Shown in pieces: positions 2,117 to 43,049 of a stretch of DNA of 64,000 nt (its first letter is position 1; the number at the start of each line of letters is the position of its first letter). Both the position numbers and the translations under genes were made by a program. The notes under the pieces were generated by a model, which saw only the letters and a program-made list of their open reading frames with translations, ran no database searches and was not told the origin of the DNA. Origin of the DNA: Octopus sinensis (taxonomy: Eukaryota). The stretch is from the NCBI RefSeq assembly GCF_006345805.1, contig NW_021835992.1, positions 62,001-126,000 of the forward strand, given 5' to 3'.

Positions 2117-2344
2117 TTACCGATTGGTTGCTGTTTTCTCTACAGCAACTGAATTTAAGATTTTTTGCATATATTTTTGTGCAATATTTTCACATAATAT
2201 TTAAATTTGAAGAATTGTAAAAAAGCTAGCTAAATCTTTTTAAGCGATATCACATATTTTATCAAATTAGATAATTCTAAATCTATACCTGTTGTTTTAT
2301 TGACATTTTTGTATAGAATTTCGAAATTAATAAAATTTTTAAAA

Positions 2345-3290
2345 TTAATAGAGAATTAAAAAGTTTTTAAATGTTAAAGAAAGATTTTCGAAATCCGGTA
2401 ACAAAATTAAAATTTTTGAGATTAATTTTTTCCGTGAAATGCAATTTTTTTCTAATAATGCAAGATATTTGAATAGTATAGGCTCACAATCATTCACCTC
2501 GTCTGAATCTAAGAATATCATTAAAAATTTACAAAATTTGAAAAATAAAATAATTTTTAAATAGCAATATTCTTCTTTCGTAATATGTAAATCAGTAATA
2601 GCTTGATACAATTCTTTAAACTGTTTCAGTATGCTTAAGATCGGTCCATTGTTACAATTCATATTAACGTGAGTTTGTGGGAAAGAATTTTTCGAAATTT
2701 GACTAAAACAGCAGTTAGAAAAATGGAAATGAAAATAATTCTTGGAGACCTTTTCGACTCCTAAAAATAATTTTAAATATGATCCCACAATCTGGGCGAT
2801 CAGATTTTCATTTTGAACCAAAATTTCAATCCATTTTCTGGTCAAATTTAGAAAACAATTTTTTTAATTTGGCTTACAGAAGTTTTCATTAAAAAGCAAT
2901 TTAAACAGTTGAAGTCGAAATATTTCTAACAATTTCACGAATAAGTCAACCTGCAGTTCAGTTTCGTACGTAATAAACTGGCTTGGAAATATCTGTGTCT
3001 CATAAGATATTGAAAATGTATTTTTAATTTCTAAAGTTAATAAATTGAATAACCTTTTTTTGTCATTCCCATGTCTAAACATTTTTTTAGCCTACAAAAT
3101 CTGCAATTATTCCTTGTTTTGTATGTTAAAATACAATTTCCTTCAAATCTGCAAAAGAACATAGATTTATTGTTCATGTATCTTCTAATAATAAATTATA
3201 CAAGAATATACTGAAAAAAATTTTTGCACCCGTGACAACTTCGGACAGAATAGTTTGTTCCATTAGCTCTGGCTCCACAAATTTTACTTG
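2345..3290 (-). pseudogene. Nuclear receptor copy 1 (DBD+LBD), start codon and first Cys deleted
   Basis: Same sequence as copy 2 but lacks the segment equivalent to 8499-8583. Zinc finger 2 CRFEGNC..RNNCRFCRLKKCLDMGM and LBD helices (ITKEEYCYLKII, KILILLPDF) are present. Confidence 0.72.
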
Positions 3291-3702
3291 AAAAAAATAT
3301 GCTATTATATATTGTTTGATAATGATATCATAGATGGCTGACAATATTTGATATTGTATCTAATCAGATTAAAAATGTAGTTTCACTTCTCAAAAATCAG
3401 AAGAAAACGAAATAATTGATAAAAATATTTTACTAACTAAGTTTATCACAAATTGATGTTTGAGCACTTAGCTTCTTAGCAAATGAAATTAAAATTATTT
3501 TGATGTCTATTTTCTCAATTTAGTTTGATTGAACTTTGTCATTTTAAATGCGTGGAAAGTCTTTTTAGTCTCACGTTTAGGGTAAATAAATATGAGACTT
3601 TGCTAAGAGATCAGACAGATTGAATTCCAGTTTTACAGTTATATTTGTTGATTCTAGAAATACTATAACCGATTATTTATATTATTAATATTACCGATTG
3701 GT

Positions 3703-6700
3703 AAAAAAGAATTTTGTTGTTGTGGTGTTGTGCATGTCCGTTTTTATCAATAACAAGAAAACGAATCCCATGGGCCTTTCTGCAGAATCAAATAATAAAA
3801 ACAGTATAGTGGATGCAGGAGTGTTGTCTCTGGGGCTGGATAACGGCACAAGAACTAATATTAACAATAACCCTACAGTTGGAAGTCGTGCTGCACCAAC
3901 TAACTTTCATTCCATGTCCGCCATTATTAAGGATGTCAAGTGTGTCTCTGAGACTGAATGGGTGTCTCAGGTGTTCTATGCTATCAAAGAAAGATTTGGA
4001 AGGATGCCTAGAGGTGGCTGGGATCTCATTCTGAAAAAGTTCAATGAAAAATACTTAAAGTGCTCAAGTCTATATCAACTAAAAAAAATGGTCAAACCAC
4101 TAAATGGGAATCAAAATGTAGGGAAAAGAGGCGATTGTAGTGAAGGAAAATCTAACATGAATATTGAAATTTCTAACTTCAAGAATTGTCTTGAAGAACT
4201 CAAAGTCCAACTCGAAAGAATCAAATCTATTCCTAGAGAGTCTCGAAAACCTACCCCAAAAATCCAAAAAATAGAGTGAAAACTAATATTCTGTCTGGAT
4301 TGAATTCTGCAATTTATCGTATTACAGAAGATAATCCTCCACAAAATATGGATCAGATTACAGACATATTATATGCTGCACAGTGTGCTTATTTGGCCTT
4401 AACTATAAGACCAAAAACAAAAAGCACATGGTTGGAAAACACAGAAAACAAAATTTGGAAATTAGCAGCTGAAATTAAATTAGTGAATTCCTTTTCGAGA
4501 CAAGCATTACCTCAATCTGAAAAGAAAAATGTAATGGATATTCTTTGCCGCTACGGGTATAAAAAATCTAAAAAGGGAGAGCTAATGAGAATTGAGGCCT
4601 TAATGAATGACCTAATCAGAATTAAAGAGAAACAAATATCCATTTATAACTCGAGGAAAGAGTTCCGAAAAGACAATGCGTGCTTCGAATTAAACCGTAG
4701 AAGGTTTTACCGAAACTTATCGTCGAATAATGAAATAACCTTATATGGCTTTGATGATGATGACTGCTTGTTATTCTGGGAGAACGTCTGGAGAAAGAAA
4801 AATATGGATCACGTTTCGTATAATTGTGTGGATGTGAGGTCTACCGGTGGTGAACCTATGGAACCTCAATTCACAAATGAGTTGGTTAAAGATATGCTCA
4901 AATATGCGCCTGATTGGAAGGCGTGCGGATGCGATGGAACATATAACTTTTTCATCAAGAAAATAAATCATTACATGAATTCTTGTGTAATGAAGTAATC
5001 CGGATAATCAAGGGTGAGTACATGCCCGAGAGTTGGTTTTACACAGGATTAACTTACTTGATTCCAAAAAAGGATGATTGTGAGAATCCAAAGGATTTAC
5101 GTCCTATAACGTGTATGCCAACTTTGTACAAGCTTGTAACGAAGTGTGTGAATGTTAAACTCTCTGATTTTGTGGATGGATTTGGGCTGATTTCAGACAA
5201 TCAACTTGGAACCAGAAAGCAATGTCAGGGTGCGAAAGAGCAGGCACTTATTAATCAATGCCTGAACAAGGAATATGGAAACAGTCTGTACTCTGCTTGG
5301 GTGGATGTAAAGAAAGCCTTTGACTCGGTTGATCACCAATTTTTATTCCACATATTGGACAGCTCTGGAATTCCACTCTGGATTATTAACTTTGTGAAAA
5401 GTATAGTCAAGAAGTGGAAAGTAAATCTACATCTTGATGGAAGGAAAATTGGTTCAGTAAAGCTAACCCGAGGAATTTTACAAGGAGATTCATTATCCCC
5501 ATTGCTATTTGTTATGGTAATGGATCCCCTAAGCAGGATCCTGAACTCTAAATTCCCCAAATTGCAAATTAATCAGGAGGATCTAAATATGTTGACATAT
5601 TCTACCAATCACCTATTTTTTATTGACGATCTAAAGATATTTGCTCTTAAAGAGGACAGTGTTATTAAAATGATGGAAGCTGTTAAAGAATTTTTTGACA
5701 TCGTTGGCCTGGAGATGAACTCTGAAAAATCGGCCTCTAATGTCAAATCTTTATCATGCTGTGAGACTTTGGAAGGAATCAATGGATATCGCTATTTGGG
5801 CGTATTTGAAGATGGAGGAAGTAATGTCCTCAAGAATAAAGTTATGAATTCAATAATGGAGAATGTAAAAAAAAGAATAACTATGTTGTCAAAAACAAAA
5901 TTGAATTCGGTGAACTTATTCTATGCCATAAATGAATATGCATTGTCCCTATATAATTATTATATTGGGCTAATTAATATTGAGCCATATGAATTTGATG
6001 ACATTGATAAACAAATACGTCGACTGCTCATGACACTCAAGTTACATCTCCAGCCTGCAAATAAAGAAAGGCTGTATTTAGACCGCAAAACTTTTGGAAG
6101 AGGACTTGCCTCTATCTCGTTCAAGAGCGAATTAATACTCATGCAATTCCTTAAAAGCTTGGAAAAACAGTCGGCTGTGTGTTTGCGAAGGTCGGGGATT
6201 CTGCGAGTTATTAAAACAAAGAAATGGCATTTGGCTACAATCGCAGGATTTCTTACCTCTAAATACGCTATTGCTGACACAGAAAGCATAGATATTAATT
6301 CTCTCAAAGACATTCAGAAAAAATATTTGCTAAACAAAATAAAGTCCAACTCACTACACTCTGTTATGTTCAAATGCCTGGATGAATCAAATGTCGATCT
6401 TTCTACTTCCTCAGAATGGTTAGCCAAAGGAAATAATGGCCCCCGAAGTGAAGCATTATACTGCCTTCTGCAAGATAGAAATTTGTTTTTTGCAAACACG
6501 AGGCCGTTATGCAATCATTGTAAAAAAAGTAAACAAACTGTTGATCATCTGGCCACTCAGTGTGGTAAAATGCTCAATAGCGATTATCTCCGAAGACATG
6601 ACGAGGTGGTTAAATGTGTCCATCTTCATATTTGTCGAATGTATGGAATCAAAAAGAACAGGAAATTAAAGACTCATTCAGTTCAGTCGATATTGTCAAC

Positions 6701-7326
6701 TCAAAATGTAGAAATTAGAGTTGACACGTCAATTATAACAGAAAATAAAGTCAACTTCAATAAACCGGATATCTTTGTTTATGACAAGATTAAAAAGGAA
6801 ATAACCTTAATCGAGGTGGGCATAACATCTCAGGACCGCTTAAAACAAGTGGAAGTTGAGAAACTTCACAAATATGATTTCCTTGCAAATGAACTATCAC
6901 TACTCTACGAATGCCAAGTTAAAATTATTCTCGTGGTTCTGACCTGGGATGGTGTTGTCACAAGATGCTTCAAAAATTATATGGATAAACTATATATTGA
7001 AAAATCTACAATGACATACATCCAATCGGTTGTGCTCAAAAGGACGCTAGAGAGCATGATAATTGAACACAAGCATGGAATGAAGATAACTGGCGAGGAA
7101 TATGCCTCTGCGACCGATCAACTAGTAGAAATGGCATGCCGCCAGGACACTCCATTCAAAGATAAAAGACGCACAACAACTGACGCAGAGATAGAGAATG
7201 AAGAGGAACAAGCAGCAGACTCTTCTCCTAAAAGGAGAAGAGAGACTACCAATCAGGATTGAAAGGCCTAATTAAATATTTTAACCTTAATTAAATTTTG
7301 GTTTCGTAAATAAACATTGACTGGTG
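3703..7326 (+). mobile_element. Full-length R4-like RT/RLE retrotransposon, copy B, with 12-bp target-site duplication
   Basis: Flanked by ttaccgattggt at 3691-3702 and 7327-7338; the uninterrupted site is at 8989-9000. Three overlapping ORFs (3698-4279, 4276-4998, 4983-7262) join into one polyprotein by single-base shifts at A-rich runs. Confidence 0.93.
3734..7262 (+). CDS. RT-zinc knuckle-RLE polyprotein (~1170 aa if two single-base shifts are corrected)
   Basis: APDWKACGCDG, LRPITCMPTLYK, QLG, KAFDSV, QGDSLSP, FIDD, CCHC, PD..E..K motifs. Colinear with the second family member at 43584-46656. Confidence 0.85.
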
Positions 7327-7555
7327 TTACCGATTGGTTGCTGTTTTCTCTACAGCAACTGAATTTAAGATTTTTTGCATATATTTTTTGTGCAATATTT
7401 TCACATAATATTTAAATTTGAAGAATTGTAAAAAAGCTAGCTAAATCTTTTTAAGCGATATCACATATTTTATCAAATTAGATAATTCTAAATCTATACC
7501 TGTTGTTTTATTGACATTTTTGTATAGAATTTCGAAATTAATAAAATTTTTAAAA

Positions 7556-8508
7556 TTAATAGAGAATTAAAAAGTTTTTAAATGTTAAAGAAAGATTTTC
7601 GAAATCCGGTAACAAAATTAAAATTTTTGAGATTAATTTTTTCCGTGAAATGCAATTTTTTTCTAATAATGCAAGATATTTGAATAGTATAGGCTCACAA
7701 TCATTCACCTCGTCTGAATCTAAGAATATCATTAAAAATTTACAAATTTTGAAAAATAAATAATTTTTAAATAGCAATATTCTTCTTTCGTACTATGTAA
7801 ATCAGTAATAGCTTGATACAATTCTTTAAACTGTTTCAGTATGCTTAAGATCGGTCCATTGTTACAATTCATATTAACGTGAGTTTGTGGGAAAGAATTT
7901 TTCGAAATTTGACTCAAACAGCAGTTAGAAAAATGGAAATGAAAATAATTCTTGGAGACCTTTTCGACGTCCTAAAAATAATTTTAAATATGATCCCACA
8001 ATCTGGGCGATCAGATTTTCATTTTGAACCAAAATTTCAATCCATTTTCTGGTCAAATTTAGAAAACAATTTTTTTTAATTTGGCTTACAGAAGTTTTCA
8101 TTAAAAAGCAATTTAAACAGTTGAAGTCGAAATATTTCTAACAATTTCACGAATAAGTCAACCTGCAGTTCAGTTTCGTACGTAATAAACTGGCTTGGAA
8201 ATATCTGTGTCTCATAAGATATTGAAAATGTATTTTTAATTTCTAAAGTTAATAAATTGAATAACCTTTTTTTGTCATTCCCATGTCTAAACATTTTTTT
8301 AGCCTACAAAATCTGCAATTATTCCTTGTTTTGTATGTTAAAATACAATTTCCTTCAAATCTGCAAAAGAACATAGATTTATTGTTCATGTATCTTCTAA
8401 TAATAAATTATACAAGAATATACTGAAAAAATTTTTGCACCCGTGACAACTTCGGACAGAATAGTTTGTTCCATTAGCTCTGGCTCCACAAATTTTACAT
8501 GAATTCAT
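7556..8508 (-). CDS. Compact nuclear hormone receptor, copy 2 (two C4 zinc fingers + LBD), mini-introns
   Basis: Manual translation: MNSCKICGARANGTNYSVRSCHGCKNFF(R)RYMNNKSMFFCRFEGNCILTYKTRNNCRFCRLKKCLDMGMTKK, then LBD-like helices. The first donor site appears one G short, so this is either a sequence error or a lesion. Confidence 0.8.
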
Positions 8509-9215
8509 TTTGATTATAGAGCACATTAAATTAAATTTATTTATAGACGAATATTATTAGAATTTGTTGAAATGAATCTCGATTTGAAAAAAATATGCTA
8601 TTATATATTGTTTGATAATGATATCATAGATGGCTGACAATATTTGATATTGTATCTAATCAGATTAAAAATGTAGTTTCACTTCTCAAAAATCAGAAGA
8701 AAACGAAATAATTGATAAAAATATTTTACTAACTAAGTTTATCACAAATTGAAAGTTTGAGCACTTAGCTTCTTAGCAAATGAAATTAAAATTATTTTGA
8801 TGTCTATTTTCTCAATTTAGTTTGATTGAACTTTGTCGTTTTAAATACGTGGAAAGTCTTTTTAGTCTCACGTTTAGGGTAAATAAATATGAGACTTTGC
8901 TAAGAGATCAGACAGATTGAATTCCAGTTTTACAGTTATATTTGTTGATTCTAGAAATACTATAACCGATTATTTATATCTATTAATATTACCGATTGGT
9001 TGCTGTTTTCTCTACAGCAACTGAATTTAAGATTTTTTGCATATATTTTTGTGCAATATTTTCACATAATATTTAAATTTAAAGAATTGTAAAAAAGCTA
9101 GCTAAATCTTTTTAAGCGATATCACATATTTTATCAAATTAGATAATTCTAAATCTATACCTGTTGTTTTATTGACATTTTTGTATAGAATTTCGAAATT
9201 AATAAATTTTTAAAA

Positions 9216-9877
9216 TTAATAGAGAATTAAAAAGTTTTTAAATGTTAAAGAAAGATTTTCGAAATCCGGTAACAAAATTAAAATTTTTGAGATTAATTTT
9301 TTCCGTGAAATGCAATTTTTTTCTAATAATGCAAGATATTTGAATAGTATAGGCTCACAATCATTCACCTCGTCTGAATCTAAGAATATCATTAAAAATT
9401 TACAAAATTTGAAAAATAAAATAATTTTTAAATAGCAATATTCTTCTTTCGTAATATGTAAATCAGTAATAGCTTGATACAATTCTTTAAACTGTTTCAG
9501 TATGCTTAAGATCGGTCCATTGTTACAATTCATATTAACGTGAGTTTGTGGGAAAGAATTTTCGAAATTTGACTCAAACAGCAGTTAGAAAAATGGAAAT
9601 GAAAATAATTCTTGGAGACCTTTTCGACGTCCTAAAAATAATTTTAAATATGATCCCACAATCTGGGCGATCAGATTTTCATTTTGAACCAAAATTTCAA
9701 TCCATTTTCTGGTCAAATTTAGAAAACAATTTTTTTTAATTTGGCTTACAGAAGTTTTCATTAAAAAGCAATTTAAACAGTTGAAGTCGAAATATTTCTA
9801 ACAATTTCACGAATAAGTCAACCTGCAGTTCAGTTTCGTACGTAATAAACTGGCTTGGAAATATCTGTACCTCATAA
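9216..9877 (-). pseudogene. Nuclear receptor copy 3, LBD part only
   Basis: ORF 9216-9533 matches the LBD of the other copies. The upstream part is replaced by unrelated hAT-like sequence. Confidence 0.7.
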
Positions 9878-10215
9878 CTTATGATGTTATCATTTTTAAA
9901 TTTTCTATCCTTCTCCAACATCATTTGAAGCATAGAAAAACTTCTTTCAATGGAAATAGTTGTTGCTGGACATTTCCATAATATCGAACAAATTTCTGAA
10001 CAATTATCAATCTTAGCAGTATAAATTTCTTTTAATCGATTTTTATCTATTCTTTTACGGAAATATTTAGATATTCCACATGGATCATCCCCAAAATTTA
10101 TCACAATAATAAATTTAACGGCATTCTCAATGGTAAAAACAGTTTCTTGGCATTGATGTAATCCATCTAATATGTCACTATAACATGATTTTATCAATGC
10201 AAGGTTTCTTTCCAA
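9878..10215 (-). mobile_element. hAT-like transposase C-terminal fragment
   Basis: CPATTISIERSFSML..LEKDR resembles the hAT dimerization-domain motif P.TS..ERSFS. Confidence 0.5.
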
Positions 10216-10352
10216 ATTAATTGAATCTAAAGCAGTTTTTTTACTTTATCCAAGACAGGGGTGCGCAAGTGCGGCCGTGAGTCGATGAATGTGCGGCCGT
10301 GGGCACAATTAGGTCATCGAGCAACTAATCTTAATAATAAAATGGTATGGTG

Positions 10353-10392
10353 TGTGTCTGTCTGTCTGTCTGTGTGTCTGTCTGTCTGTCTG
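10353..10392. repeat. (GTCT)n microsatellite near the Helitron 5' end
   Basis: gtgtgtgtctgtctgtctgtctgtgtgtctgtctgtctgtctgt. Confidence 0.9.
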
Positions 10393-10569
10393 TGCACACC
10401 CACATTCAAATTGTTACAAACCAGATCAAATTGTCAAAACCTTCCCTTTTGTAGTTATTCGATAATGAGGCACAATAAAGGTTGATATCCTCTAAGAACC
10501 TTCCTGTCAAAAAATTTTAATAAGAAAGAATATCCTCGATGATGAGGTCCCCCAAAACCTTCAAGTCAA

Positions 10570-11410
10570 TTTTCTGCGTTTTGTTAAAATGAACAACAAG
10601 AAAGTCCTCGACTCACATGATGTGGTCCCCCAAAACCTTCAAGCCAAAAAATTAAAAAAAATTATTTTCTGCGTTTTGTTAAAATGAACAACAAGAAAGT
10701 CCTCGACTCACATGATGTGGTCCCCCAAAACTTTCAAGCCAAAAAATTAAAAAAAATTATTTTCTGCGTTTTTGTTAAAATGAACAACAAGAAAGTCCTC
10801 GACTCACATGATGTGGTCCCCCAAAACCTTCAAGCCAAAAAATTAAAAAAAATTATTTGCTGCGTTTTTGTTAAAATGAACAACAAGAAAGTCCTCGACT
10901 CACATGATGTGGTCCCCCAAAACCTTCAAGCCAAAAAATTAAAAAAATTATTTTCTGCGTTTTTGTTAAAATGAACAACAAGAAAGTCCTCGACTCACAT
11001 GATGTGGTCCCCCAAAACCTTCAAGCCAAAAAATTAAAAAAATTATTTTCTGCGTTTTTGTTAAAATGAACAACAAGAAAGTCCTCGACTCACATGATGT
11101 GGTCCCCCAAAACCTTCAAGCCAAAAAATTAAAAAAAAATTATTTTCTGCGTTTTTGTTAAAATGAACAACAAGAAAGTCCTCGACTCACATGATGTGGT
11201 CCCTCAAAACCTTCAAGCCAAAAAATTTAAAAAAATTATTTTCTGCGTTTTTGTTAAATGAACAACAAGAAAGTCCTCGACTCACATGATGTGGTCCCCC
11301 AAACCTTCAAGCCCAAAAATTAAAAAAAAATATTTTCTGCGTTTTTGTTAAAATGAACGACAAGAAAGTCCTCGACTCACATGATGAGGTCCTCCACAAC
11401 CTTCAAGCCT
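10570..11410. repeat. Tandem array, nine copies of a 95-97 bp unit
   Basis: The atgaac(a/g)acaagaaagtcctcgactcacatgatg unit starts at about 10589, 10684, 10780, 10876, 10971, 11066, 11163, 11258 and 11353. Differences are mostly homopolymer lengths. Confidence 0.95.
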
Positions 11411-12119
11411 CGTGAGGCCATTAATTAGCTTAGCTATCTTTTTTCGATGACATAAATTCTTTTTGTTAAATTTTCGTTAAAAAAATAAAATAAAAGCTCT
11501 AATTGTTATCGACCATGAATAGACTGTGCAATTATCAGATTTTGAAAACCACTAAAAAGGAAAAAGCAAAAATTATTAGAGATTTACATAATTGATTCTT
11601 TTTAACTGCCGAAACTGACAAATTCGATTATGCTACTGTTTAGATTTCTTAAAAGATAGAGGCAAATAAAATTTAAATTAGTCATGTAAATTTCAATTTG
11701 CCTATATTTAAATCTCCTTGATTTAACAGGCTTTAATTTTTTTCCTTATAATACTACAAAGATGAAGCTGATTATCATTTTCTTTACCGAAACAGACAAG
11801 TTCGATTATGCTAAAGTTTCAATTCCTTTAAACATAGAGGCAATTAAGTATAATGGCTTTGATTGGATAATACACTTTACATAAATTTCACTAAATAAAT
11901 TTACGTAGAAAATTTAATATAAATTACTGATTCGCGTTTACAAAATCATAAGAATGTCCTATAAAGAGAGATCTGAGAATGTTAACAAACAAGAGAATAT
12001 GAACCATATAACAAAAAAAGAGAAACGAGGGAAGATGTGCTTAAATGGTGAGGGAACTTAGACAACAGCTGAACAAGGTCAGGACTGCTGTTAGACTCAA
12101 CTACGGGTAATAGAATTAT

Positions 12120-12925
12120 GCATTCTAGGTTAATTGTTTGGGATGAATGTACGATGGCTCATAAAGGCGCATTCAAGCAGTTGACCGAACATATAGAGAT
12201 ATCAAGAATTGTAGCGACCATTTGTTTGAAGGAGCATTAGTTGTATTGGCAGGTGATTTTAGACAGACGCTGCCAATTATTCAAAGAGGGACGCCTGCGG
12301 ATGAATGAATGCCTGCCTCAAATCGTCATATTTGTGGACACACGTGAAAAAGGTAAGCTTAGATGTAAATGTACATGCACATTTACAAGGCGTTAATAGC
12401 ATATTCCCACAAATCCTTCTAGATATTGGAAATGGGGCAATCACTTCAGAAATGCACGACCAGAAAATTAGGCTACCGGAAGAATTATGTATTTTCGTAG
12501 AAACAGCAGAAGAATTATTGAATGCCGTCTATTCCGAACTATCTGAACACTACGTGAATTTCGACTGGCTGCGTGAACGAGCTATATTAGCTCCACTTAA
12601 TGATGAGGTACTTAATATAAATTTAGATTTATTAATGAAAATCCCTGGCAGAGAAAGAATATATAAATCGGTCGACGTTATTATGGACCATGAAAGGGCC
12701 TGCGATAGATTTAAGAGACTACAATTTCCGCTGAAGATAAGTTTTGCTATGACAATAAACAAGGCCCAGGGACAGTCTTTAAAGGTAGTAGGCTTATTTT
12801 TAGAGAACGAGTGCTTTTCACATGGCCAGCTGTATGTGGGGTGCTCAAGGGTAGGTAGAAGAGAAATTTATTTATATTTGCCAAGGATGGACGGACTGCA
12901 AACATCGTTTATCCACAGGCCTTAG
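12120..12925 (+). pseudogene. Helitron Pif1-type helicase, degenerate and internally deleted
   Basis: [67 protein letters not shown]. Confidence 0.88.
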
Positions 12926-14328
12926 AATAAGGTTATATCAAAGCAGTCGCATTTATATATCTACATAAATTTATAGTTATTTAAGGAAACTGCGAGCGTA
13001 GCGAGCAGGGCCTCCGCAGGAGCTAGCTCGCAGTGAGCGAAGCGAACTGCTGAGCTAGTCTTAAATATAATGCTCATAGTGTTAATTAATCAAGAAAAAC
13101 CCTAAATAATAATTAAAAATATTCATATTAAATAAAATTCTATTTTTATATAATGGTTAACCTTTATAAAAATAATTATCATAAACGGCTTTATTTATAT
13201 ATGTCATTACCTGCTAAAAGACGACGTTTTTTGAATGAAGAAAAAAGAAAATTTAATATCAACTGGGAAAGTGAATACTTCGTAGTCGAAACAGACAACA
13301 ATAGCATGCAATGCTTATTGTGCCATGAGATTGTGAAAACTATAAAACGGGACAATGCTAAACAACATTTTCAAAGACATTTAGACCACCTAGTTGTCAA
13401 GTCCAAGTGTTCAAGAGAAGATTCCGTCGAAAATTTAAACAAAAAAATGTTTAAAAACTTTTTTAAATGAGGCAAATGCAAGAGTTGAAGCATCCTTTCG
13501 AGTTGCTCATATCCTTGAATCTGCTGGAAAACCTTTTTCAGACGGCGAACTTGTGAAAAAATGTATCATGGAATCAGTTAAATGCATTGATCCCGACAAG
13601 GAGCATAACTTTGAAGCAATTCCACTTTCACGTGACACAATTCAGCGCCGACAGTTTCATATTGCCGAGCATCTTAATCTATCACTCCTACAAAATTAAA
13701 TTCTCAAACTACGTTATTTTCACTTGATTGATGAGTCGAATGATATATGTAATTCTGATCATATTTATTCGTACTCTATCCTTCGATTTAAAATACATGA
13801 GGATTTTCTATCCATAAGGTCACTACCTGGAAATTTACGGGGTCAAGATATATTTGAAATAGTTAAACAATGTTGTTTGGAATTCAAATTGGACATGACA
13901 TGTCTCATCATTGATTGATCTCATTGATGACAAAATAATTAATTATGACGATCTTACACCAAATACATTTAATACTATATTCGATTATATTTTGAAACAA
14001 TTTGAAGAGCGATTTAACGAATTTAAAAAAATTGAATTCAAACTTCAATTAACTGCAGCACCACATACTGTTTTCGATTGAGAATGCGCCATTGGAATTT
14101 CAAATGAATTATTTAAATTAAAAAATGATTTAATTGATAAATAAATTTAATGAAAGCGAAGATTTGTTGAATGTATGGAAATCAGCGACAGATTATCCAA
14201 ATTACGTGAAATGGCAAAAAATATTCTCGTTTTATTCGGAAGCACATATTTATGTGAATCTACATTTTCCAAAATGAAATATTTAAAAAGTCAATATAGA
14301 TCTCGGATAACGGATGCACACTTAGTAT

Positions 14329-14625
14329 GTGATGGATCTCTCGAAAAGCAAAAATCTTTATTACCTGGGAGCAAACCGTCAACTGTCGTGGCTCGTACGC
14401 AGATCATATAGCAAATCAGAGAAAGAGGAGTGTGAGGATCCTCAAAGCTTAACCAGGTTCCATCTGGATCCGGAAACGTACATCTACGTATACAAAACGT
14501 GTGTGCAGCCAGTCCTCACATATGGCTACGAAGACTGGTACGGTACGGAACAGAGTGACTACCTGATCGAACAGTTGGAAAAGACAAGACTTTTCGCTAT
14601 GAAATTGGCTTACGGAGTTTTGCAA
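14329..14625 (+). mobile_element. 3' fragment of the Jockey-like LINE seen at 19.5-22.8 kb
   Basis: Near-identical to about 22313-22600 (gtgatggatctctcgaaaag...ttggcttacggag). Confidence 0.85.
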
Positions 14626-18720: not shown

Positions 18721-19248
18721 AAATAATAATGGTGATTCTACTAAAATAAATAATCAATTATGTTTTTTTTCATACTAATATCTTATTGCAGAAAAAATCC
18801 ATATTTTTTGATAGTCTCATCATTTTTTCCATATCAAATTTGGAACTTGATCAAATAATTATTCTATTCATTACAAATATTTCACCGAAGCCTTTTGATG
18901 AAAGCAGCTCCTCATTATGATATTTCCTCCCTAGTGCTTTATGGTGGTTATGGGTGTATTTTTGGTATGTGTATTTTTGGTTATATATTTTTGAGGCCCG
19001 CCGTGATAGATACATAGCCGATCTCATTGACTTAGGAGATATTCGGAAATAAACGATTCAAATTCATGGGTATTACCATTGTTTATTTTAGTCTTGTCAT
19101 CATTGATTCGTTTTCAAAGTATGCAGTTGTTGAATTATCTAAAACTAAGAGCAGAAAAAAAATATCTAGTCTCTTCAGAAATATTTTCTATCTATATTAA
19201 TAAAAAAGTTTAACTAAATTTTAAAAATTCTCTAAGTTAAGAGATACC

Positions 19249-19276
19249 GCGGCCGTAGGCCGCATAGGGGACTAGT
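19249..19276 (+). mobile_element. Second Helitron 3' terminus
   Basis: Hairpin gcggcc-gta-ggccgc followed 8 nt later by CTAG|T. Confidence 0.6.
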
Positions 19277-19499
19277 TAAATTTTTATATCAAACACTTGT
19301 GGGTTAGAATAGTTTTTTATTGACAGTTTTTAAGATTTGATTTTTAAAATATTAGAGTTTAAAATCATTTAAATAAAAATATAATGTTTATTTATATATT
19401 TGCCCTTTAGAAAAATTGTAAGCATGGTGCGTTTTGTTTCTGGGTTGTGAATCCGTTTTACCTGGTACAAAAATCCCAAGAGGCAATGCTATCGATGTT

Positions 19500-22400
19500 A
19501 CAAATTTGGACACATCTCGTTATACTGTAAAGAGACAGTGCGCTGTTTGTTGTGTGGTGATGCACACGATCGCACCCAATGTACGATCGTAACACACGTC
19601 AAACTCCCGTGCATCAACTGCGGATCACATGGACACCGGGCGAACTGGTTGGGCTGTCCGGTGGCGAAACAATCGACAAAGAAGAAACTGGAAGTGACTC
19701 CCACTAAGAGAAATCGTGTAAATGCAATACAAATGTCTGGATACCAATGTCTTGGTCGAAGAAGAAGTTACTTAATCCGAAATGCGATATTGGTGTTCAA
19801 ACTGACGTTATCGTCAAGAACTTGATCGAATCCGGAAGTCAGACCTGCTTCATTAACACGGGAATTCAAACGGACCCATGCCCAGAAACAAACCCGCCGC
19901 CCGAAGGCGAGAGAGCAGTGAGAGAAATGAAGAAACTGCAGTAGCAAAATCTGGAGTTCAGCTGCCAAGCCCTGAAGCCCGGCTGGAGGACGATGGGACG
20001 CCTCCAGAGCCGGCTGAAACCGGTGGCAAACGGAAAGCAGGCAGACCCCCTTTACCGAAAAAGGTGGCGCTCCCACGGGAGGTCAGCCACCAATGTCGGA
20101 AGGATTCCTTGCTCTGACAATTCTAAATGCCCGCTCGCTTGCGAGACGGGCATCGGAGCTGAGGCTCCTGCTGGCCACAGCGAAGTCTCACATATTGATT
20201 ATCAATGAGACTAAGCTGAAGGAAGCTACGAGGGTGGAATTCGAAGGCTATAAGTCTATTAATATACCATGGAAAATAAAATCAGTGGCGGGGACAGGAA
20301 CCTCAGTCTACTACAGGGCGAACCTTAAGGTAAGAAACATCAGAATTGTGGAGGAGTCACTCTGTGAACTTATTGTGCTCGAGCTGCACACGACTGCTGG
20401 CTGGCTAACCGTCGGGGGATGTACTCAAAGTCGCTAAGGCGCTATTCAAACGTTATTGGGACGTTCTTTGAGGAAAATTGCCTGTCAATCCTAGCAGGAG
20501 ATCTTAATGCCAAAAATGTGAGTTATGGATGTGAAACTACGAATATGGATGGAACTGTCCTTGAGGACTTGGCCAGTAGCTTGGGTTTTTCGGTCTTTAC
20601 ATCGGAAGAACTGAATCATTATGCAGACAGAGGCAGGGCTGATCGCTTGGGTCTCTTTCTATGCTCGGCATCAATTAGTCCTTATGTTACATACCGAGGT
20701 TGGAAGCGGACATTGGCTCTGACCACGTGCCGCAAACGATGTTGATAAAGATGACTATGAATGTTACGGAGGACTTGTTCATTGGTTACAACCTCGTGAA
20801 CATGAACTGGAGTTTTATTCGAATCATATATGCGGGATTCTCTTCGAAATGTCGTGTCCAGCCTCTGAGAAGCAGAGAATATTGACAATCTCGATGATCA
20901 CCTTAGATCGTCAATCATAAAATTCCTGGATGTTTATCCATTAAAAATGTATGGAACCCAAAGGAACGCAAAAGCGGATGAATTCGAAACTTGTCACTCT
21001 GATCAGAACGAAAGGTACCCTGGAAAATCGCAGGAGAAGAGTCGGTTGAGTCAATCAAATGCCGCCTGAAATTGGAGATCGACAAGATAAAATTCTACTA
21101 TTGCAAAAATGGCCAAGACTGAGGTCGAAAGTAAATGGAGGTCTGAATGCAGAAAAACTGGATAAGCGAAACCCTAATTTCTGGAAAGCATATCAACGCC
21201 TTACCAGAAATGATGCAAAAGGATTTGAAATTTCACTAAAAAGAACCAGACGGGAAAATATCTCCTCTGATCGTATCCCGGAAGTACTCAGGAACCAACT
21301 TAGTCAGGTTCAAGAGGTCGAATCTACCGTTCCACGAGGGACTTATGACCGAATTGTGAAGAAGCTTGGCTCTTCGCAATTATCGGAGGGACCATTATGT
21401 GGGGCAATAACAGGAAGAGGTTGAAAGGGCAATTGCTGGGTTGAAGAACAAGGCGCCTGGCTTCGACTACATCCCTCCGAAGTTGTTAAAGAAGGCCCTG
21501 AAATCTTGATACGAGCAGCTTGACTATGTTGTTCACGCCAGCTGGACGTTCGGACACCTTCCATCGGCGGTGTGGAAGCATACGATTGTTCGAATGATTC
21601 CAAATCTGGTAAATCGACACTGCTGGCACAGAACTACCGGCCAATTAGCCTCATTTGTGCTTTCTCTAAGACAATGGAAAAGATTGTCTTTAACAGACTC
21701 TCTGGTCATATAGAATCACAAAATTTGCTTTTACCTGAACAATGGGGATTTCGTGGAGGAAGATCCACAGGGGACTGCCTCAGGGAGTTAGAGCCAATTA
21801 TCCCGTGCTGACAGAAAGAAGCATGGCTCATGGCTAATGTGGTGTGTCTGGATCTGGCCAAAGCCTTCGATAGCGTGTGGCACCTGGGCCTACTCTCCAG
21901 AATCCATGACATCGGAGCCGGGATAAAGACCTATCGATGGCTGGAGAGCTTCTTGTCAGGAAGACAATCATTTGTCCGCTGTGGAAACCGCCTATCGGGG
22001 TGTGTGGAAACTTAGAAGGGGAGTCCCGCAGGGATCTATCTTGAGTCCACTTCTGTTCAACCTCTTCTTGGCGGACATTCCTCTGCCGTCGACACGTACT
22101 GGCAAGCTCGTTATCTATGCTGACGATATCCTGGTCATGGATACCTCGAAAAGGATATCGCAGTCCTGGAGACGACTGAAATCATACATTGCAACGCTAA
22201 AGATGTGGACTATAGAGAAGGGTTTGACCCTAGCATCGGAGAAGAGCACCATTTCATGGTTGCGGAGGGGAGTCGCTATGCGGAGTCTTGTGCATATGCG
22301 ATGAGTAGCTATGTGATGGATCTCTCGAAAAGAAAAAAAATCTTTCTTACCTGGGAGCAACCATTAACTGTCGTGGCTCGTACGTAGAGCATATAGCAAA

Positions 22401-22810
22401 TCAGAGAAAGAGGAGTGTGAGGATCCTCAAAAGCTTAACCAGGTTCCATCTGGATCCGGAAACGTACATCTACGTATACAAAACGTGTGTGCAGCCAGTC
22501 CTCACATATGGCTACGAGGGCTGGTACGGAGGAGAGTGACTACCTGATCGAACAGTTGGAAAAGACAAGACGTTTCGCTATGAAATTGGCTTACGGAGTA
22601 CAACTTGACGGAAGGCTAAAAGACTCACAAGAATCCTCTGTGCCCACGATCCGGATGGTCTTGGAGAATTGTCGTCAAACATGACTAGTATTGGGGATAC
22701 GCATGGAAAGAGACACTTCGGTGCCTTGTTTTTATCTCCCCGCCGATGTTTTTCTTCCTTGTTTTTCTTTTTCTTTTCGCTCAATAAACACTATTCTATT
22801 CTATTTTACA
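19500..22810 (+). mobile_element. Jockey/I-group LINE (ORF1 zinc knuckles, APE endonuclease, RT), heavily frameshifted
   Basis: CLLCGDAH..CINCGSHGHRANWLGCP; LNARSL..INETKL; AGDLNAK; YRPISLIC; LDLAKAFDSVWH; GVPQGSILSPLLFN; YADD. Confidence 0.88.
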
Positions 22811-29914: not shown

Positions 29915-30442
29915 ATAGATAAACAAAGATGGAGTAAAAAAATTCAAAAAGGTATAAAAACAATATAAAAATGTCAAAATAATAAAAGAGATTGACTTTG
30001 AAGGAATAAAATCAGAATAAATGATACAAAAAATAAAATTTCAAATTCTGAAATCAGGAAATGAAAGTTCATAATGATTCATTCCTTAAAAATCAAATTA
30101 AATAAGAATGTAAAAAAGTACAAATAAAATACTAACAAAGTATGACAACCACGTGTATCAACGTGTTATAATTTATTAGGATTACCTTGAAAAATAGGTT
30201 AACCATAGTGTAATAATTTTAATAAATATGAATTTTATTTATATTTTCGAGAAACTCTACCAATTCACTAATCTAACATTCTATTATATCGAGTCGCAAG
30301 ATGGACCACCGATTGAGTCACAAACTCTTCATATCTAATCGTTGCATTAAAAAACTAACCATAGTTTTAGTCAAAGATTTATATTGTGGATAATTTAAAA
30401 AATAATAACAAAATTGTATTTAAATAATAATATAATAGAAAA

Positions 30443-31941
30443 ATGCGTTCTCGTCGTAGTGGGGCAAAAGCAGTAAATGGAAGGCCAGTAAAGTCTGTCT
30501 CTCCTGGCCGAGAAATGAGATTAGAAGAACGTAAAGAACTGAGTGATCTGAACAGTCGACTGGCTACATTAATAGAACACAACCGTGGACTGGATGTATG
30601 ACTGAGTATGTGAGTTGTAGAGAGAAGGAGGCCGTAAAATGTACGAAGAGGAGTTGAAGGATGTCCGCAGTCTATTGGACAAAATATCCAACGAGAAAGC
30701 GGAGGTGGAAATAGAGAGGGGCCGACTAATGTCCGAGGCAGAAGACCTACGAGAAAAGTAAGAATAAAATGACATTCCAGACTGGAGGCGAGTGAGTGTG
30801 ATGTGTCCAGACTAAGGAAGCTAAATGGAAGTCTGAGTACTCAATTAGGCCACAAGACTGCCCAAATAGAGACCCTCTCATTAGCCCTGGAAGAGGCATG
30901 TGAAGATATGAACAAATTAAAACGTGACTTGGAGAATGGAGAGAAGCAATTGAATGTAGCACGTAGTCAGTTGGAGAGGGAGACATTGGGGAGAATAGAG
31001 GCAGAGAACTCTCTCCAAACAATGAGAGAGACAGCCGTGTTTGACAGATCAGTGAGGAGTGGGGAAGGAATATACGAGGATATGCGAGATCAGTTGGATG
31101 ATGATATGTGTCTTGTTATGAGTAGAATGGAAGGAATACACCAAACTAAGGCATATTTGTACACTCATGGGTTAGATTGATGCACTCAGAAAGGAATTGG
31201 ATGTTCGGAAACAACAAGTGAGTTCATTGACTGACCAAATGACCACTCTCACTGCACGTTTAAAGGAAAGGAATCAAGAAATTGAGAAATATATTCGACA
31301 GATTAGTCAATTAGAGAAAACATTGCTCGACAAGCAGGTGGAGATGGATGAGGCCAGTCTTGCACATACCACACATATTGGGAGGACTGAACAACTCCTT
31401 TCTCACCTTACTGCCACTCTGGATAATACTCTCGATGAACATCACGACTTGTTTGCAGCCAAAGTCCGGCTGGATACGGAAATCGGGGCTTACCGTACTC
31501 TCATGGAGAAGGAGGAGACGAGACTTGAGTTGGATGGGCCACGGAAGAGGAGACGAGATTCCCTCTGCTCTCTTTCTACGGGGGATGTCCGTATTGTACA
31601 TCAGTCTGATGATACTGTCAAACTCCACAACACTGCCGACACTGTAATCACATTTCTCATTCTAGACTGTCGATGTGTCAGCCTGGCTGCTTACTCAGAC
31701 TGTACTCTCACAACAAGTGTCCTTTCTCTTTCCCCCTCAGACTACACTCCCTCCCCAAGGATATTGTAATATATATAGTCCTGACTCCACTCATGATTCA
31801 CAACATCTCTCCTTTGCACTACAATATCCCTGGTTGGCTGGACATCCTTCTATTATTCGATTGTTTGATGCCAATAACGTGCAAGTCGCCAAACGTTACT
31901 TCACTACTCCAGTCAAGCAATCAGCGTGTCTTTTAATGTAG
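30443..31941 (+). CDS. LMN: Nuclear lamin (B-type; about 467 aa spliced)
   Basis: SP head site, ELSDLNSRL, LDTEIGAYRTLMEKEETRL, NLS PRKRRR, Ig-like tail domain and C-terminal CaaX CLLM. Introns 30596-30620, 30758-30780, 31151-31175 (GC-AG) and 31644-31665. Confidence 0.93.
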
Positions 31942-32038
31942 TAGTCTTACTTGATTCTTTTCTTTTTCCATTATTTGTTTTGTATTTTCTTGTTATTAAA
32001 TATTTGTAATAAATATTGTCACGTTAAGTATTGTTGTG

Positions 32039-32259
32039 ATGGATGCCCCTGCTGCATTAGGACAGGTGATGAGTAAGTAATATAGAAGGTGACCAAAGTA
32101 CTGGGAAGAGTAGGCTCGCAGGGTCAGTGCACTCAAGTGCGAGTCACTCTTATGAACACGGCCCATCGGAGTATAATCAGGAATGTCAAGGGCCCTGTGC
32201 GTGTGGGAGACGTGATTGCTCTCATGGAGTGTGAGAGAGAAACCAAGAGGCTCTATTAA
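32039..32259 (+). CDS. RPS28: 40S ribosomal protein S28
   Basis: [44 protein letters not shown]. Intron 32066-32088 (23 nt). One extra base in gggccc (~32160), probably a sequencing error. Confidence 0.93.
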
Positions 32260-33162
32260 CTGTTCCTTTTCTGTGTTTGTGAATAATTAGTCCTTGTTTG
32301 TGTATCCACTATAATATGACTTAGACCAAAATATTATAAATTCGAATAGGTAGTATTTATCCACCTGTTTACTTTATACGTCCAACACGGTAGAGGAGTA
32401 CCCCACTAAGTAGGCATAATGAGGACTCATTTTTCATATAATGTAAAAGGCATTTGATTTTGAAATGGGGAGGCATTGATGAATCAATTTAAGTCTTGAG
32501 AGTCTAGTTTGGTGTACATCTCCTGTGTCTTCATCACATATTGGCCTACCAAGACTGACGGATTAGACTAGCAAAAGAATCTGTTATTCCATTTCTACCA
32601 ATTCCCATTCGACGTTGCGATCATTGAGAAATTGGTTTAGAGTTTATTGAAATAGACTCCTTTATTACCACGCCTTTGCTAGTCATTGAAGAATTTTAGC
32701 GGGGTGTAATTGAAGTGAAATGTTTGTGGAATGAATAAAGAACGGTTAGTACTCCAGGAAACCTGCCATTTCTATAAGACAGTCTTCCGACTTTCCAAAG
32801 AGGTTTGAAATGAGCGTGCTGAACATACGGAAATGATTGACGGAATTAATGAGGAAATATGTCCAAACTTATTAATTATTCCATTACACAACATTTCCCT
32901 ATCCTAACCCTAAAAGAATTATCACCAACTCTGTCTATAAGTGACTCCCACTTCAAATCTCTAATATGCCTGAAATAGTTCTAGGAGACATATGACTTTC
33001 GTGGACAGAATGTGGCAAGAATAGACGTCGGGGGGTCCAGTCTGGTATGACATGTGTCACTGGGGGATGACAGGTCTGGAAGGGGGAGAAATACACCTGT
33101 TTGTCAATAATGAGATGCACAGCCTGTCACTAAAGATCAATAGTAAATGAAATATTAAAAAA

Positions 33163-33879
33163 TCATTGTTTAGTACTAAAATAATTTGGTGGATCCCCCA
33201 GAAAGAACATATCCCCTTCGTTGGTGTTGAAAAAAAGATTGTGATTAGTGGGTATCTCCTCTAAGTGGTCAAGTTTGTCCCTTTTTGCTTTTTGTCGTCG
33301 ATTACAAAACCACACACGGACAACATCCTTGTCGAGATTGAGACTGCTGGCAATTCTACGGAGAGTGTTGGACACAGGTTTAGGATTTTGGAAGAAATAC
33401 TTTTCGAGGGCATATTTGAGAGAATTGTCAATGGGTGTTCTCTTTTTGCGTTTCTGTGAATGTGTGTGTTTTTCAGGAATGCAGTTGTCCATTGTGTCTC
33501 TGGTTATTTCATCCACCCATTTCTCCAAGAGGGGCTTCAACTTGCACATGTTCTTGGTGGACAGTTGGAGTGACTCAAAACGACACACAGTCGTCTGAGA
33601 CAAATAACTCCCATAAAGATTCCCCAATGCGTTCCCCACGTCTGCTTGTGTGTGTCCATTCCGCATTCGAATTTGCTTAAACTTTTTGGCAAATTCGACC
33701 AGTTCTTCCGAACTGACAGCCTCCTTGGGTTGTTCTTCCTTGTCTTTGACGAAATACGACCTGAACAGATCCTCGTCTGAATAGACGTAGGAACCCCACA
33801 TTTCGTTATAGGGTTCCCACATGTAGTAGTCTGGCTGATACATCACCAAGTTGTTATTCGGATAGTCGTTAAAGTCCAT
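33163..33879 (-). CDS. POU3F: POU-domain transcription factor, class III-like, intronless
   Basis: POU-specific TQADVGNALG..SQTTVCRFESLQLS.KNMCKLKPLL and homeodomain KRKKRT..VVRVWFCNRRQK. Confidence 0.9.
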   Translation of the reverse strand: MDFNDYPNNNLVMYQPDYYMWEPYNEMWGSYVYSDEDLFRSYFVKDKEEQPKEAVSSEELVEFAKKFKQIRMRNGHTQADVGNALGNLYGSYLSQTTVCRFESLQLSTKNMCKLKPLLEKWVDEITRDTMDNCIPEKHTHSQKRKKRTPIDNSLKYALEKYFFQNPKPVSNTLRRIASSLNLDKDVVRVWFCNRRQKAKRDKLDHLEEIPTNHNLFFNTNEGDMFFLGDPPNYFSTKQ

Positions 33880-33972
33880 TTAAAAACTGAATGATCGGCC
33901 ATATATATACCATCGATATTGCCGGCCAATACATCCGGACATGAAACACTTCCGTCATTTATTTTAATATCC

Positions 33973-35294
33973 ATGGACACGCAATGTCATACTTGTACTG
34001 ATGCCACTAATCTTTTTAGAGAAAACATTCGAAGGCAGCCATTCCACTACCCAGTTCACCAGACAGTTCACCAGTCACTCCAACAAAGAGTCCAATTTGA
34101 GACAAGGCGGAGACAGAGGTTGTCTTATCATCTGACAAAAGACACTACCAAGAGAAAATCCGCCAGCAACAGGCTGACGAAGAAGAATACAGAAGAAAAG
34201 TCTTGGCAGAGAGACACCAACGCTTCCAAGAAATCACAGAAAAGTACCAAAGGGGAACATATGTGAAAAGGAGACCACAAACGTATTCCCCCAAACTGAG
34301 TAGCCCCATGTTGATGTTTTTTAGTGACGTACTGCCGACCAAGTTCTCAGCGACCAGCCATCAAAGAAAGCAGTCGCCAATAAATGTTAATTGTAGACAA
34401 ATCCTCGAAATACCACGTACAGCGAGTACATTCCGCCCCTTCCTTGAATCAACAGCAACAAATACAGGACGAAGTGACAAATAAAAACACTCTAAACGAA
34501 GAGGATATGCCTCGACTAACCACGTTTTCTCGGAGTCCATTGAGCAAAATTATTTACTCCCAGCAACTACTGCCGATTGCCTATCAACCCTCCCTCAATA
34601 AACCACCAGAACACAACACATCTGACAAAACAGTCAAAGGAGGTCACAACATTTCCGACAATTCGTTTCTGAGTGGATGCATTGAAAAGAAATGTCAAAA
34701 AGCGAAGGAATGTTTAAAAGACACGAAAGGAATACTAAAAACGTGTCCTCCCATGTCTTGCCAACAAAGACAGTGAGATTCGCTGATCAAATCGAATCAA
34801 ATAATTCGGAACGTCCTGAGACGACAGACACAAGTTGTACTTGCAGTAATCAGCAGCCTCAGGTAACAAATGGAGAGTCCCCATCCAAATCAACGGTAAT
34901 ATTCACACTGAATTGCCGTCGCGGAATATTTACCTCTCCAATAGACCAAGTTCCACATACTCAGGGACCCCCAGATCCCACCAAATTTCAAAAACGGCGC
35001 AGATTCCCGTCCCAGCCAAATCTGGTAGTATTCCAAAGCATGCCCGGATGCGTGTGAATTTACTGCCTAGTATGATTGGGGTATGATTTGGTAGCACTCG
35101 ACAGCATTGCTCTGTTCAATGCAGCCGAGAGATACGTCACCTACGACAACCTGTCACTTAGTCTGGTCAATAAACTTGTCAACGACGCAGTGTGCACTCG
35201 CCGACGTCCCCCTTCAGTGCTGTCGATAGAAGAAAACCGTCTGCTGAACTCTTTAGAGAGACTTGACAAAAAATTGTCTCGACTGATAACATAA
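33973..35294 (+). CDS. CEP126 (KIAA1377)-like centrosomal coiled-coil protein, several mini-introns
   Basis: Spliced ETRRRQRHYQEKIRQQQADEEEYRRKVLAERHQRFQEITEKYQR and C-terminal SVLSIEENRLLNSLERLDKKL resemble the two conserved CEP126 blocks (recalled, not searched). Confidence 0.55.
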
Positions 35295-35342
35295 CCAAAT
35301 TTTGTATATTAAACAAAACCATAAAGAAACCAAGAGAGAGTG

Positions 35343-36957
35343 TTACTTAAGTAGTTTGTATTCGAGATGCATATGGTTGATGGGCGAAAGTCCATGACAA
35401 GCGCGGAATAGGTTGAGAAGGCAGGCCCTTTGAGGGAAAAGTGCGTTGACAAGTGGACTGTTTTGTGGGACGAGAGGAGCCTTGAAGAAGAAACTGAGTG
35501 CGGAGGCAATGGAGTTGAAGGGACGTTGACCGATGTGAATGCGTGAAAGAAGTTCAGCACAGAGAACAATGTCGAGCATGATTGGTGCGGCCAAGAGTGA
35601 GTCCTCACACGTGTTGTACACGGCGATGGTGTTGAGGCCTCCCAACATGAGACGACTGATGTACTCGTCCATGGCCCGTTTAGAGTCGCCGACAAAAGGA
35701 GCGTATTTGATGACAACCTAAGAATATGAAGAGGACATTACTAGATGGTCAGGTTTGTCGGCTGGAGTGGAGTAGAGAATGTCATTGGAGTGAACCATGT
35801 CGTCGATCACGTTACTTTTGGATATCTCCTTGGAACGGAATTGCTGAGGGGCGTTCAAGTTATATCCGTCGTTGTTGCCCAAATGGTTGTAGCTTACGAC
35901 TGATTTGAGATGAAGTCCACAGGACACGAGAAAGTCTGCGAGGACTGATTTTAGTCGAGTCTGTCCGGTCTTAAGATCATCTCCGGCAATGGACACTCCA
36001 CGACTCTCAGCCAACTGAATGAGGCCGGGAACGAACGTGTTTTGTGGAGAACAGTTGACAAATGTGCACTAAAGTAAAAGTGAGGGACAACCCCCTCGAG
36101 CACACTGGCCACTCCGTACAATGTGGAGGACGAGATTTCGGTTTCATTGGCTCGGATGGAGGCCTCCAACTCTTCCCATGTCGCGTTGAGTCCTTCTTTC
36201 ACCTCACAGAATCGTTCCGTGTTTGCTGTCCACATAACCACAACCTTCTCCAGTTGATTCATACGCTTGAAATCGCGAATGTCCTGTCTTAGTTGTTCCA
36301 CCAATTGCTCTTTCTTTCCCTCAAGCACATTGTCTGCCCTCGATGATTGATTCCCCGCCACAAAGTCAGGCACAAATGCTGCCTTCAGGGGTTCCATTTT
36401 ACTCATCATCGGTCTTAGCTGTTCCTGCAGATCCCAGTCCAACACTTTTGCTCTCTCCGCCGCCTCTCCCAGGTTTGCCTTCGAAATATCCCATCCTACA
36501 CTCCCCCACTCTCAATACCTCCCAACACCAAGTCTCCCGGCTCCACCATCGGCAACATGTTTTTTACCCCCACATACCATTCCTCGTTCTCCAGTTGGCC
36601 CACGTAGCATGTCCCCGACTGAGTGAACGACCCCCTCAACTCCGCATCCACTTGTCCATCCTTCGTCCGGAAACTCAGTTTGTGTTTGTTCGCCAGGATT
36701 GCCGCTGTCAGGGTTGACCCATTGTTGCCTCCCCATCCTGCCATCATCAGTCCCAGACGGGGAACTCTGGTGTCTGTCACGAACACATATTCCTCCTCTT
36801 CTCGCTTCACCACGAACGAGTCTTGTTCTGCCCTCACTACTGACCGGTCGTATGCATATCTACGCCTTCACTCATTCACACTCACCTTGCCTCTATCCGG
36901 TCTCCAAAATACTTTACTCTTGGATCATTCACTCGGAAACCGCACTCTCTCTATCAT
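35343..36957 (-). CDS. ISYNA1: Inositol-3-phosphate synthase
   Basis: [68 protein letters not shown]. Multiple ~20-26 nt introns and one apparent extra base near the start. Confidence 0.95.
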
Positions 36958-41569: not shown

Positions 41570-41571
41570 TA

Positions 41572-43029: not shown

Positions 43030-43049
43030 TATGTCCTGTCTGTCACTTT

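Follow-up and report, generated by a model that had tools for sequence, protein, structure and literature searches.

A very divergent, short nuclear receptor (NR) gene, probably of a dicyemid-like animal, was found in a 64,000-nt stretch of DNA (VCDQ01002782.1:62001-126000 of the Octopus sinensis assembly GCA_006345805.1; hereafter, the window), where it is present as three very recent local duplicates that are most likely decaying pseudogenes. The NR identity, the gene structure, the lesions, and the relationships of the copies (A, B, and C) were read directly from the DNA. The first-pass annotation had taken the locus as an NR gene with an atypical, His-containing P-box, and this reading is borne out.

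Copy B lies on the minus strand at 7556..8508, with the ATG at 8508-8506, the stop codon TAA at 7558-7556, and exons at 8508-8424, 8396-8266, 8242-8163, 8137-7744, and 7719-7556. Read from 8508, the minus strand encodes MNSCKICGARANGTNYSVRSCHGCKNFF and, after a short gap, ...RYMNNKSMFFCRFEGNCILTYKTRNNCRFCRLKKCLDMGMTKK; downstream of the second finger, helical, Leu/Ile-rich ORF pieces continue until the TAA. With the lesions corrected, the copy B exons total 855 nt (284 codons plus stop), and the protein merged from the copies is 284 aa, with a frame that is uninterrupted over 855 nt. A motif scan of all six frames found NR-type zinc fingers only at this locus and at a paralogous site near 3100. 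All eight Cys are present (C-x2-C-x13-C-x2-C ... C-x5-C-x9-C-x2-C), and the gene retains the P-box Lys, the Arg that follows FF, and RxxCRxKKC in the second finger. The raw exon ORFs matched Pfam zf-C4 at E=6e-8 and 3e-10. In the HMMER check on the spliced model that the first-pass annotation had proposed, the DNA-binding domain (DBD), which is intact only in the merge of copies A and B, scored 79.6 bits (PF00105, E=2.4e-22) against a cut-off of 21.1 bits; with these E values, the motifs are far beyond chance. The gene is thus a member of the nuclear receptor superfamily by its C4 double zinc-finger DBD. The P-box reads CHGCKN (TGT CAC GGG TGC AAA AAT) at 8448-8431 and again at 3237-3220 in copy A, and the D-box reads CRFEGNC at 8365-8345 and again at 3153-3133, all on the minus strand and both as first annotated. 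The His codon (CAC, 8445-8443) is identical in copies A and B, which speaks against the read error that had been considered for it.

Four GT-AG introns of 27, 23, 25, and 24 nt were recognized, all on the minus strand. Intron 1 (8397..8423, 27 nt, GTATATTC...TTATTAG) separates the two zinc fingers. The donor TTCAG|TATATTC, earlier reported to lack a G, is an artefact; the true donor is CA|GTATATTC, and the intron is an ordinary 27-nt GT-AG intron. In copy A, where the same intron lies at 3185-3211, splicing yields CKNFFQRYMNNKSMFFC (spliced product CKNFFQRYMNNKSMFFCRFEGNC) with the canonical 11 residues from FF to the next Cys. The T run ahead of the donor is T7 in copy A (3214-3220) and T6 in copy B (8426-8431), and it is only because of this T6 that the 27-nt intron is out of frame in copy B. 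A 17-nt GT-AG intron that would restore the copy B frame was rejected, being shorter than every intron seen and adding three residues to the inter-finger linker. Intron 2 (8243..8265, 23 nt, GT-AG) is immediately 3' of the DBD (…GMTKK|EIKN…); when it is left unspliced, the reading terminates after GYSIY. Intron 3 (8138..8162, 25 nt, GT-AG) is the sole canonical junction joining the two open frames on either side and was also found in copies A and C. Intron 4 (7720..7743, 24 nt, GTAAAT...TCTTAG) is in frame and without a stop, and it is the weakest call among the four; its removal raised the Pfam score of the ligand-binding domain (LBD) from 22.1 to 25.3 bits.

The gene is reduced at both ends. 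In copy B, the Met stands three residues ahead of the first zinc-finger Cys (MNSC), as had been claimed; an in-frame ATG is located six codons further upstream, and the N-terminus would still be just 9 aa with it. The NR gene therefore has essentially no A/B domain, for which there is a precedent in the Panagrellus receptor P0003, beginning MQCAVCG. For the C-terminal part, the HMMER check against Hormone_recep (PF00104) that was proposed along with that for zf-C4 came out above the cut-off, at 25.3 bits against 23.5 bits for the merged protein, but the match is marginal and covers profile positions 113-206 only. The nearly absent hinge of the first-pass annotation was not confirmed, as the ~130 residues from the DBD to the Pfam-recognizable part of the LBD match nothing. 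Within the recognizable part, EYCYLKIILFF was aligned by phmmer to EYAYLKAIIFF of HNF4A (helix 7/8 stretch), and the protein terminus (…KNFLILY*) falls nine residues past the helix-10/11-like LLPDFENLSLTF. A C-terminal AF-2 helix (helix 12) was not found, nor was a GT donor ahead of the stop codon. Because the stop is preceded by no donor and followed after 44 nt by an AATAAA (7507..7512, minus strand), the AF-2 helix is taken to be absent. Helix 12 is also missing from some true NRs. An exhaustive HMMER search with the copy A LBD ORF of 1.84 billion representative proteins gave zero matches, and an exact-product look-up of the copy A ORF gave no record. AlphaFold, run on the same LBD ORF as a single sequence without an alignment, returned an all-helical model with pLDDT 51; a Foldseek search of the PDB with this model yielded no match at E<=0.001, which is uninformative rather than negative given how the model was made. 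The LBD thus appears degenerate, probably ending right after helix 10/11, and its assignment as an LBD is marginal.

Self-comparison of the window resolved three units, each starting with TTACCGATTGGT and 98.8-99.7% identical to each other: unit A at 2117-3690, unit B at 7327-8988, and unit C from 8989, with homology ending at 9877. The three receptor copies that were first counted exist as three units; the DBD is present in A and B only, an ATG in B only, and none of them is intact. With T7, the DBD of copy A (2345..3290, minus strand) is in frame. This copy has lost its ATG to an 85-bp deletion (junction 3287/3288), which also converts the first Cys to Ser, and no in-frame ATG occurs between the deletion site and the upstream stop. 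Copy A is also frameshifted at an A7 run (2859-2865) where B and C have A8, and its LBD part is a single open ORF of 166 codons (2845-2345). Copy B has three frameshifts in total: the T6 run at 8426..8431, with which canonical splicing gives ...CKNFFKDT*; an extra C at 7969, which is common to copy C, is not in a homopolymer, and leads to an in-frame stop 15 codons on; and the loss of one T near 7757. These lesions shift the segment encoding ...ILKQFKELYQAITDLH.TKEEYCYLKII out of frame. GT-AG introns that would bypass the stop which the extra C introduces into B and C were tried and rejected, as each would delete the only Pfam-recognizable LBD segment. Copy C (9216..9877, minus strand) consists of the LBD part only, without a DBD; it has the same extra C as B and lacks one A 66 nt later, leaving one in-frame TAA.

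All three copies together carry five frameshifting 1-nt indels in ~855 nt of coding sequence. Over ~1.57 kb, copies A and B differ by eight indels and six substitutions in a neutral-looking pattern; seven of these indels are of 1 nt, and five of the seven are within homopolymer runs. All four introns are kept, and each copy as assembled has at least two disabling lesions, as in an unprocessed (duplicated) pseudogene. Each lesion is found either in a single copy or in the pair B and C alone. Since the lesions are private and the merged frame is open at a local GC of roughly 30% (26-33% in 2-kb bins over the copies), the parent gene was very probably functional shortly before the duplications. 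The lineage-specific expansion proposed in the first-pass annotation therefore holds as a recent local amplification and not as three working paralogues, each copy being disabled as assembled. That the present copies no longer make a full receptor is the best-supported reading.

The units are associated with a LINE retrotransposon (RVT_1; 3703..7326, plus strand), which separates copies A and B and has TTACCGATTGGT on either side, at 3691 and at 7327. Its 3' part is present a second time at 1-2116, ahead of unit A, so that the same LINE 3' junction is found in two adjacent units. The flanking TTACCGATTGGT is a 12-bp duplication, and the unit junctions are at 2117, 3691, 7327, and 8989. An exact-product look-up of the LINE ORF2 gave no record. 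Over the 2116 nt of their LINE parts, units A and B show no difference (100% identity), whereas their NR parts differ at 14 sites. This contrast is not predicted by simple duplication and could be a sign of assembly or polishing effects; its possible causes include a site-specific element, gene conversion, and a polishing artefact. The NR gene was most likely duplicated locally and very recently, partly along with an inserted LINE. A hairpin (GTTGCTGT-N6-ACAGCAAC, 7337-7358) lies just past the LINE 3' end, ~200 nt downstream of the NR stop codon, and also starts units A and C. Beyond the units, about ten tandem copies of a 95-96-bp repeat were seen at 10436-11486 (94-97% identical in the better-conserved stretch 10569-11409), adjoined by a (GACA)n-like microsatellite at ~10340-10400. 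Remains of mobile elements were seen at 12305-12925, 41809-42814, 14323-14618 / 22306-22599, 43584-46656, and 60840-62726. They comprise a helicase-like ORF without a Pfam match that is possibly Helitron-derived, a Tc1/mariner transposase whose inverted ends (41570-41760 and 42841-43031) are 81% identical, and several more LINE/RT copies, of which some have broken frames.

The assembly is PacBio-based, and polishing with short reads cannot be relied on in near-identical tandem repeats; since homopolymers hold five of the seven 1-nt indels that distinguish A from B, some of the frameshifts may be errors. Error is an unlikely explanation for the extra C, the 85-bp deletion, or the six substitutions. 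The merge of the copies is a perfect ORF with canonical introns, the majority of the small indels fall in A/T runs, and an AATAAA follows the stop; together with the absence of differences in the LINE against 14 in the NR parts, which hints at assembly effects, this would fit at least one copy (most likely B) being a functional minimal NR in a live lineage-specific expansion, with the frameshifts as assembly or polishing errors. We regard this as possible but doubtful, because three independent errors would have to fall within 950 bp of copy B, neither the 85-bp deletion in A nor the extra C at 7969, which C has too, is an error of the homopolymer kind, the six substitutions mean that the copies genuinely differ, and the unique genes of the contig have no frameshifts. 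The sequence is not generally error-ridden, as shown by the intact unique genes for RPL19 and a 238-aa POU protein on the contig. The more specific proposal of a working, dicyemid-specific NR of 284 aa, without A/B and AF-2, binding a half-site other than AGGTCA or AGAACA, and tandemly amplifying in one of the most reduced animal genomes, with all frameshifts as assembly errors, is rather improbable.

Copy C is joined to a mobile-element fragment. A hAT-transposase C-terminal dimerization-like ORF (9878..10245, minus strand; …CPATTISIERSFSMLQMMLEKDRKF…) runs in frame into its LBD part; the match to PF05699 (E=5.6e-4, 20.1 bits) is just below the cut-off of 21.4 bits, and no further transposase ORF was found upstream of the fragment. 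It is very improbable that the functional product is this chimera of a hAT-derived domain and an NR LBD-like tail, with A and B as by-products: the hAT-like ORF does enter the LBD part in frame and with the same 25-nt intron, but there is an in-frame TAA within the LBD part, the hAT piece is a 125-aa C-terminal fragment below the Pfam cut-off, and its upstream transposase ORF is missing. Recent duplicates of a parent receptor that are now decaying remain the preferred reading.

For the parent receptor, the closest parallel in the P-box is the nematode NHR-97 family. A word-indexed homology search with the 284-aa merged protein returned three nematode NRs only, via the CHGCK word, and the two best database matches, found through the same word, are NHR-97 family members. 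The CHGCK core, first annotated as non-canonical, is invariant in this family and therefore not new to the superfamily: 43 of the 43 DBD-bearing members retrieved read CHGCKC, spanning Caenorhabditis, Haemonchus, Necator, Toxocara, Steinernema, Bursaphelenchus, Strongyloides, and Globodera. NHR-97 (C. elegans nhr-97, CBR-NHR-97) shares this core with the present gene, and the D-boxes are similar (CRFEGRC in Necator NHR-97, P0135, and CRFDG[RK]C in other strongylids vs CRFEGNC here). Identity is 42%, over the DBD only. NHR-97 has CHGCKC-FFWR, a first-finger loop of 14 residues, an N-terminal extension, and a normal LBD in ~440 aa in total, whereas the present gene has FFQR, a 13-residue loop, and no similarity in the LBD. 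Membership in NHR-97 was therefore rejected on FFWR, the 14-residue loop, and the LBD, only the CHGCK core being common to both, and the shared His is most simply explained as convergent. CHGCKN followed by FFQR was absent from all sequences retrieved, which are not a systematic survey. A literature search gave no relevant paper on CHGCK and mentioned nhr-97 only incidentally.

Across the DBD, ~74 residues can be aligned with no gap to the solved HNF4A, GCNF, and VDR domains, and identity between the first Cys and GM is 46-51%. HNF4A is the best PDB match overall, and GCNF and VDR are equal to it on the DBD alone (GCNF 76.5, VDR 71.7, HNF4A 71.6 bits); as these scores are too close, no subfamily (NR2A-like, NR6-like, or unplaced) can be assigned. 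The HNF4 (NR2A) D-box, CRFSRQC, shares its CRF start with the present gene, and the short LBD stretch aligned above also matches HNF4A. The CDGCKG P-box that defines HNF4/NR2A is replaced by CHGCKN: HNF4, GCNF, and VDR have CDGCKG or CEGCKG and an R or K after FF, where the present gene has Q. Unlike them, it lacks an AF-2 helix and an A/B domain, and its LBD is otherwise unrecognizable. P-boxes of atypical sequence are common among the divergent NRs of fast-evolving spiralian parasites, for instance CEPCKV, CEACKAFFQQ, and CDSCRA in Platyhelminthes (PMC8363021). The platyhelminth divergent NRs and the nematode supnr expansions are lineage-specific, fast-evolving, and locally duplicated, like the present gene; they differ from it in being intact annotated genes, whereas every copy here is disrupted.

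NR DBDs bind hexameric half-sites, and the first discriminating residue of the P-box is Glu, Asp, or Gly in the known classes. With His at this position and Asn at the last, the half-site preference of the parent receptor may differ. Judged from these residues, a new DNA specificity due to the His may reasonably be expected, as had been proposed; the question is moot if the copies are pseudogenes. The parent protein would presumably have bound AGGTCA-like half-sites via the His/Asn P-box, possibly with altered specificity, and since it would have had no A/B domain and no AF-2, it may have acted independently of ligand, for example as a constitutive factor or a passive repressor.

The contig itself does not resemble octopus DNA. 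At least eight cellular genes are present in 64 kb among many LINEs, the window is LINE-rich with a GC content of ~35%, and introns are 21-27 nt in all genes inspected. The RPL19 gene (62928-63700, plus strand; three canonical GT-AG introns of 27, 26, and 25 nt) encodes a protein only 58-63% identical to RPL19 of any animal, with no named cephalopod RPL19 among the 120 matches listed; it is also a handy internal standard for intron size and sequence accuracy of the contig. The 238-aa POU gene (33163-33879) reads intact, and its protein matches VCDQ01002782.1 exactly, which fixes where the window lies on this contig. Published data give close parallels in dicyemids, which inhabit octopus renal sacs. 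In Dicyema japonicum, sampled from O. sinensis, GC is 36.7%, repeats make up 49% with LINE ORF2 abundant among them, and introns average 38 bp (PMC6736024); in Dicyema sp., the median intron is 27 bp and two thirds of introns are <30 bp (PMC6543705). The traits of a Dicyema-like genome (ultra-short introns, ~37% GC, LINE richness, divergent proteins, and O. sinensis as host) are thus all represented. As host, intron size, composition, and protein divergence match the published dicyemid genome descriptions, we infer that the contig is dicyemid parasite DNA within the octopus assembly. D. japonicum has eight zf-C4 and four Hormone_recep genes (Table S5, PMC6736024), so that Dicyemida, with only ~8 NRs, stand in contrast to the expansions in platyhelminths and nematodes. 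Among the papers searched, none describes the D. japonicum NR genes individually, and none mentions contigs of dicyemid origin in the O. sinensis assembly.

A second contig bears on this origin. A cluster mate of the POU protein, XP_029655559.1 (239 aa), carries the record name [quoted passage not shown] and is encoded on VCDQ01012509.1, which is collinear with 30350-38047 of the window at 87-92% identity; the collinear genes in VCDQ01012509.1:107505-128224 (L002) are those for POU, inositol-phosphate synthase, and an intermediate-filament protein. This contig is either a second haplotype or a second dicyemid species. No homologue of the NR or of the hAT piece was found in L002, and ZBED5/FAM200-like hAT-derived genes were seen at 18873-20422 of it. 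A genuine O. sinensis gene, that is, a cephalopod lineage-specific NR, is hardly credible: the contig does belong to GCA_006345805.1, and the POU cluster mate has an O. sinensis name in RefSeq, but introns of 21-27 nt in all genes checked and at least eight cellular genes in 64 kb are atypical for octopus and typical for dicyemids, RPL19 is ~60% identical to that of every animal with no named cephalopod among the matches listed, and part of the window recurs at 87-92% identity on a second contig of the same assembly.

With a dicyemid source preferred, at least two contigs of the O. sinensis reference, 374 kb and 294 kb long, appear to consist of parasite DNA. Cephalopod comparative genomics can be misled by this, because the POU cluster mate on the second contig bears an octopus name in RefSeq and UniProt. 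The His P-box would be a second, probably independent, occurrence, which would make the specificity conferred by His vs Asp/Glu a worthwhile question. For the nuclear receptors, the gain is modest, an undescribed, highly reduced receptor type from Dicyemida, and the presence of parasite DNA in a host assembly is the larger practical consequence.
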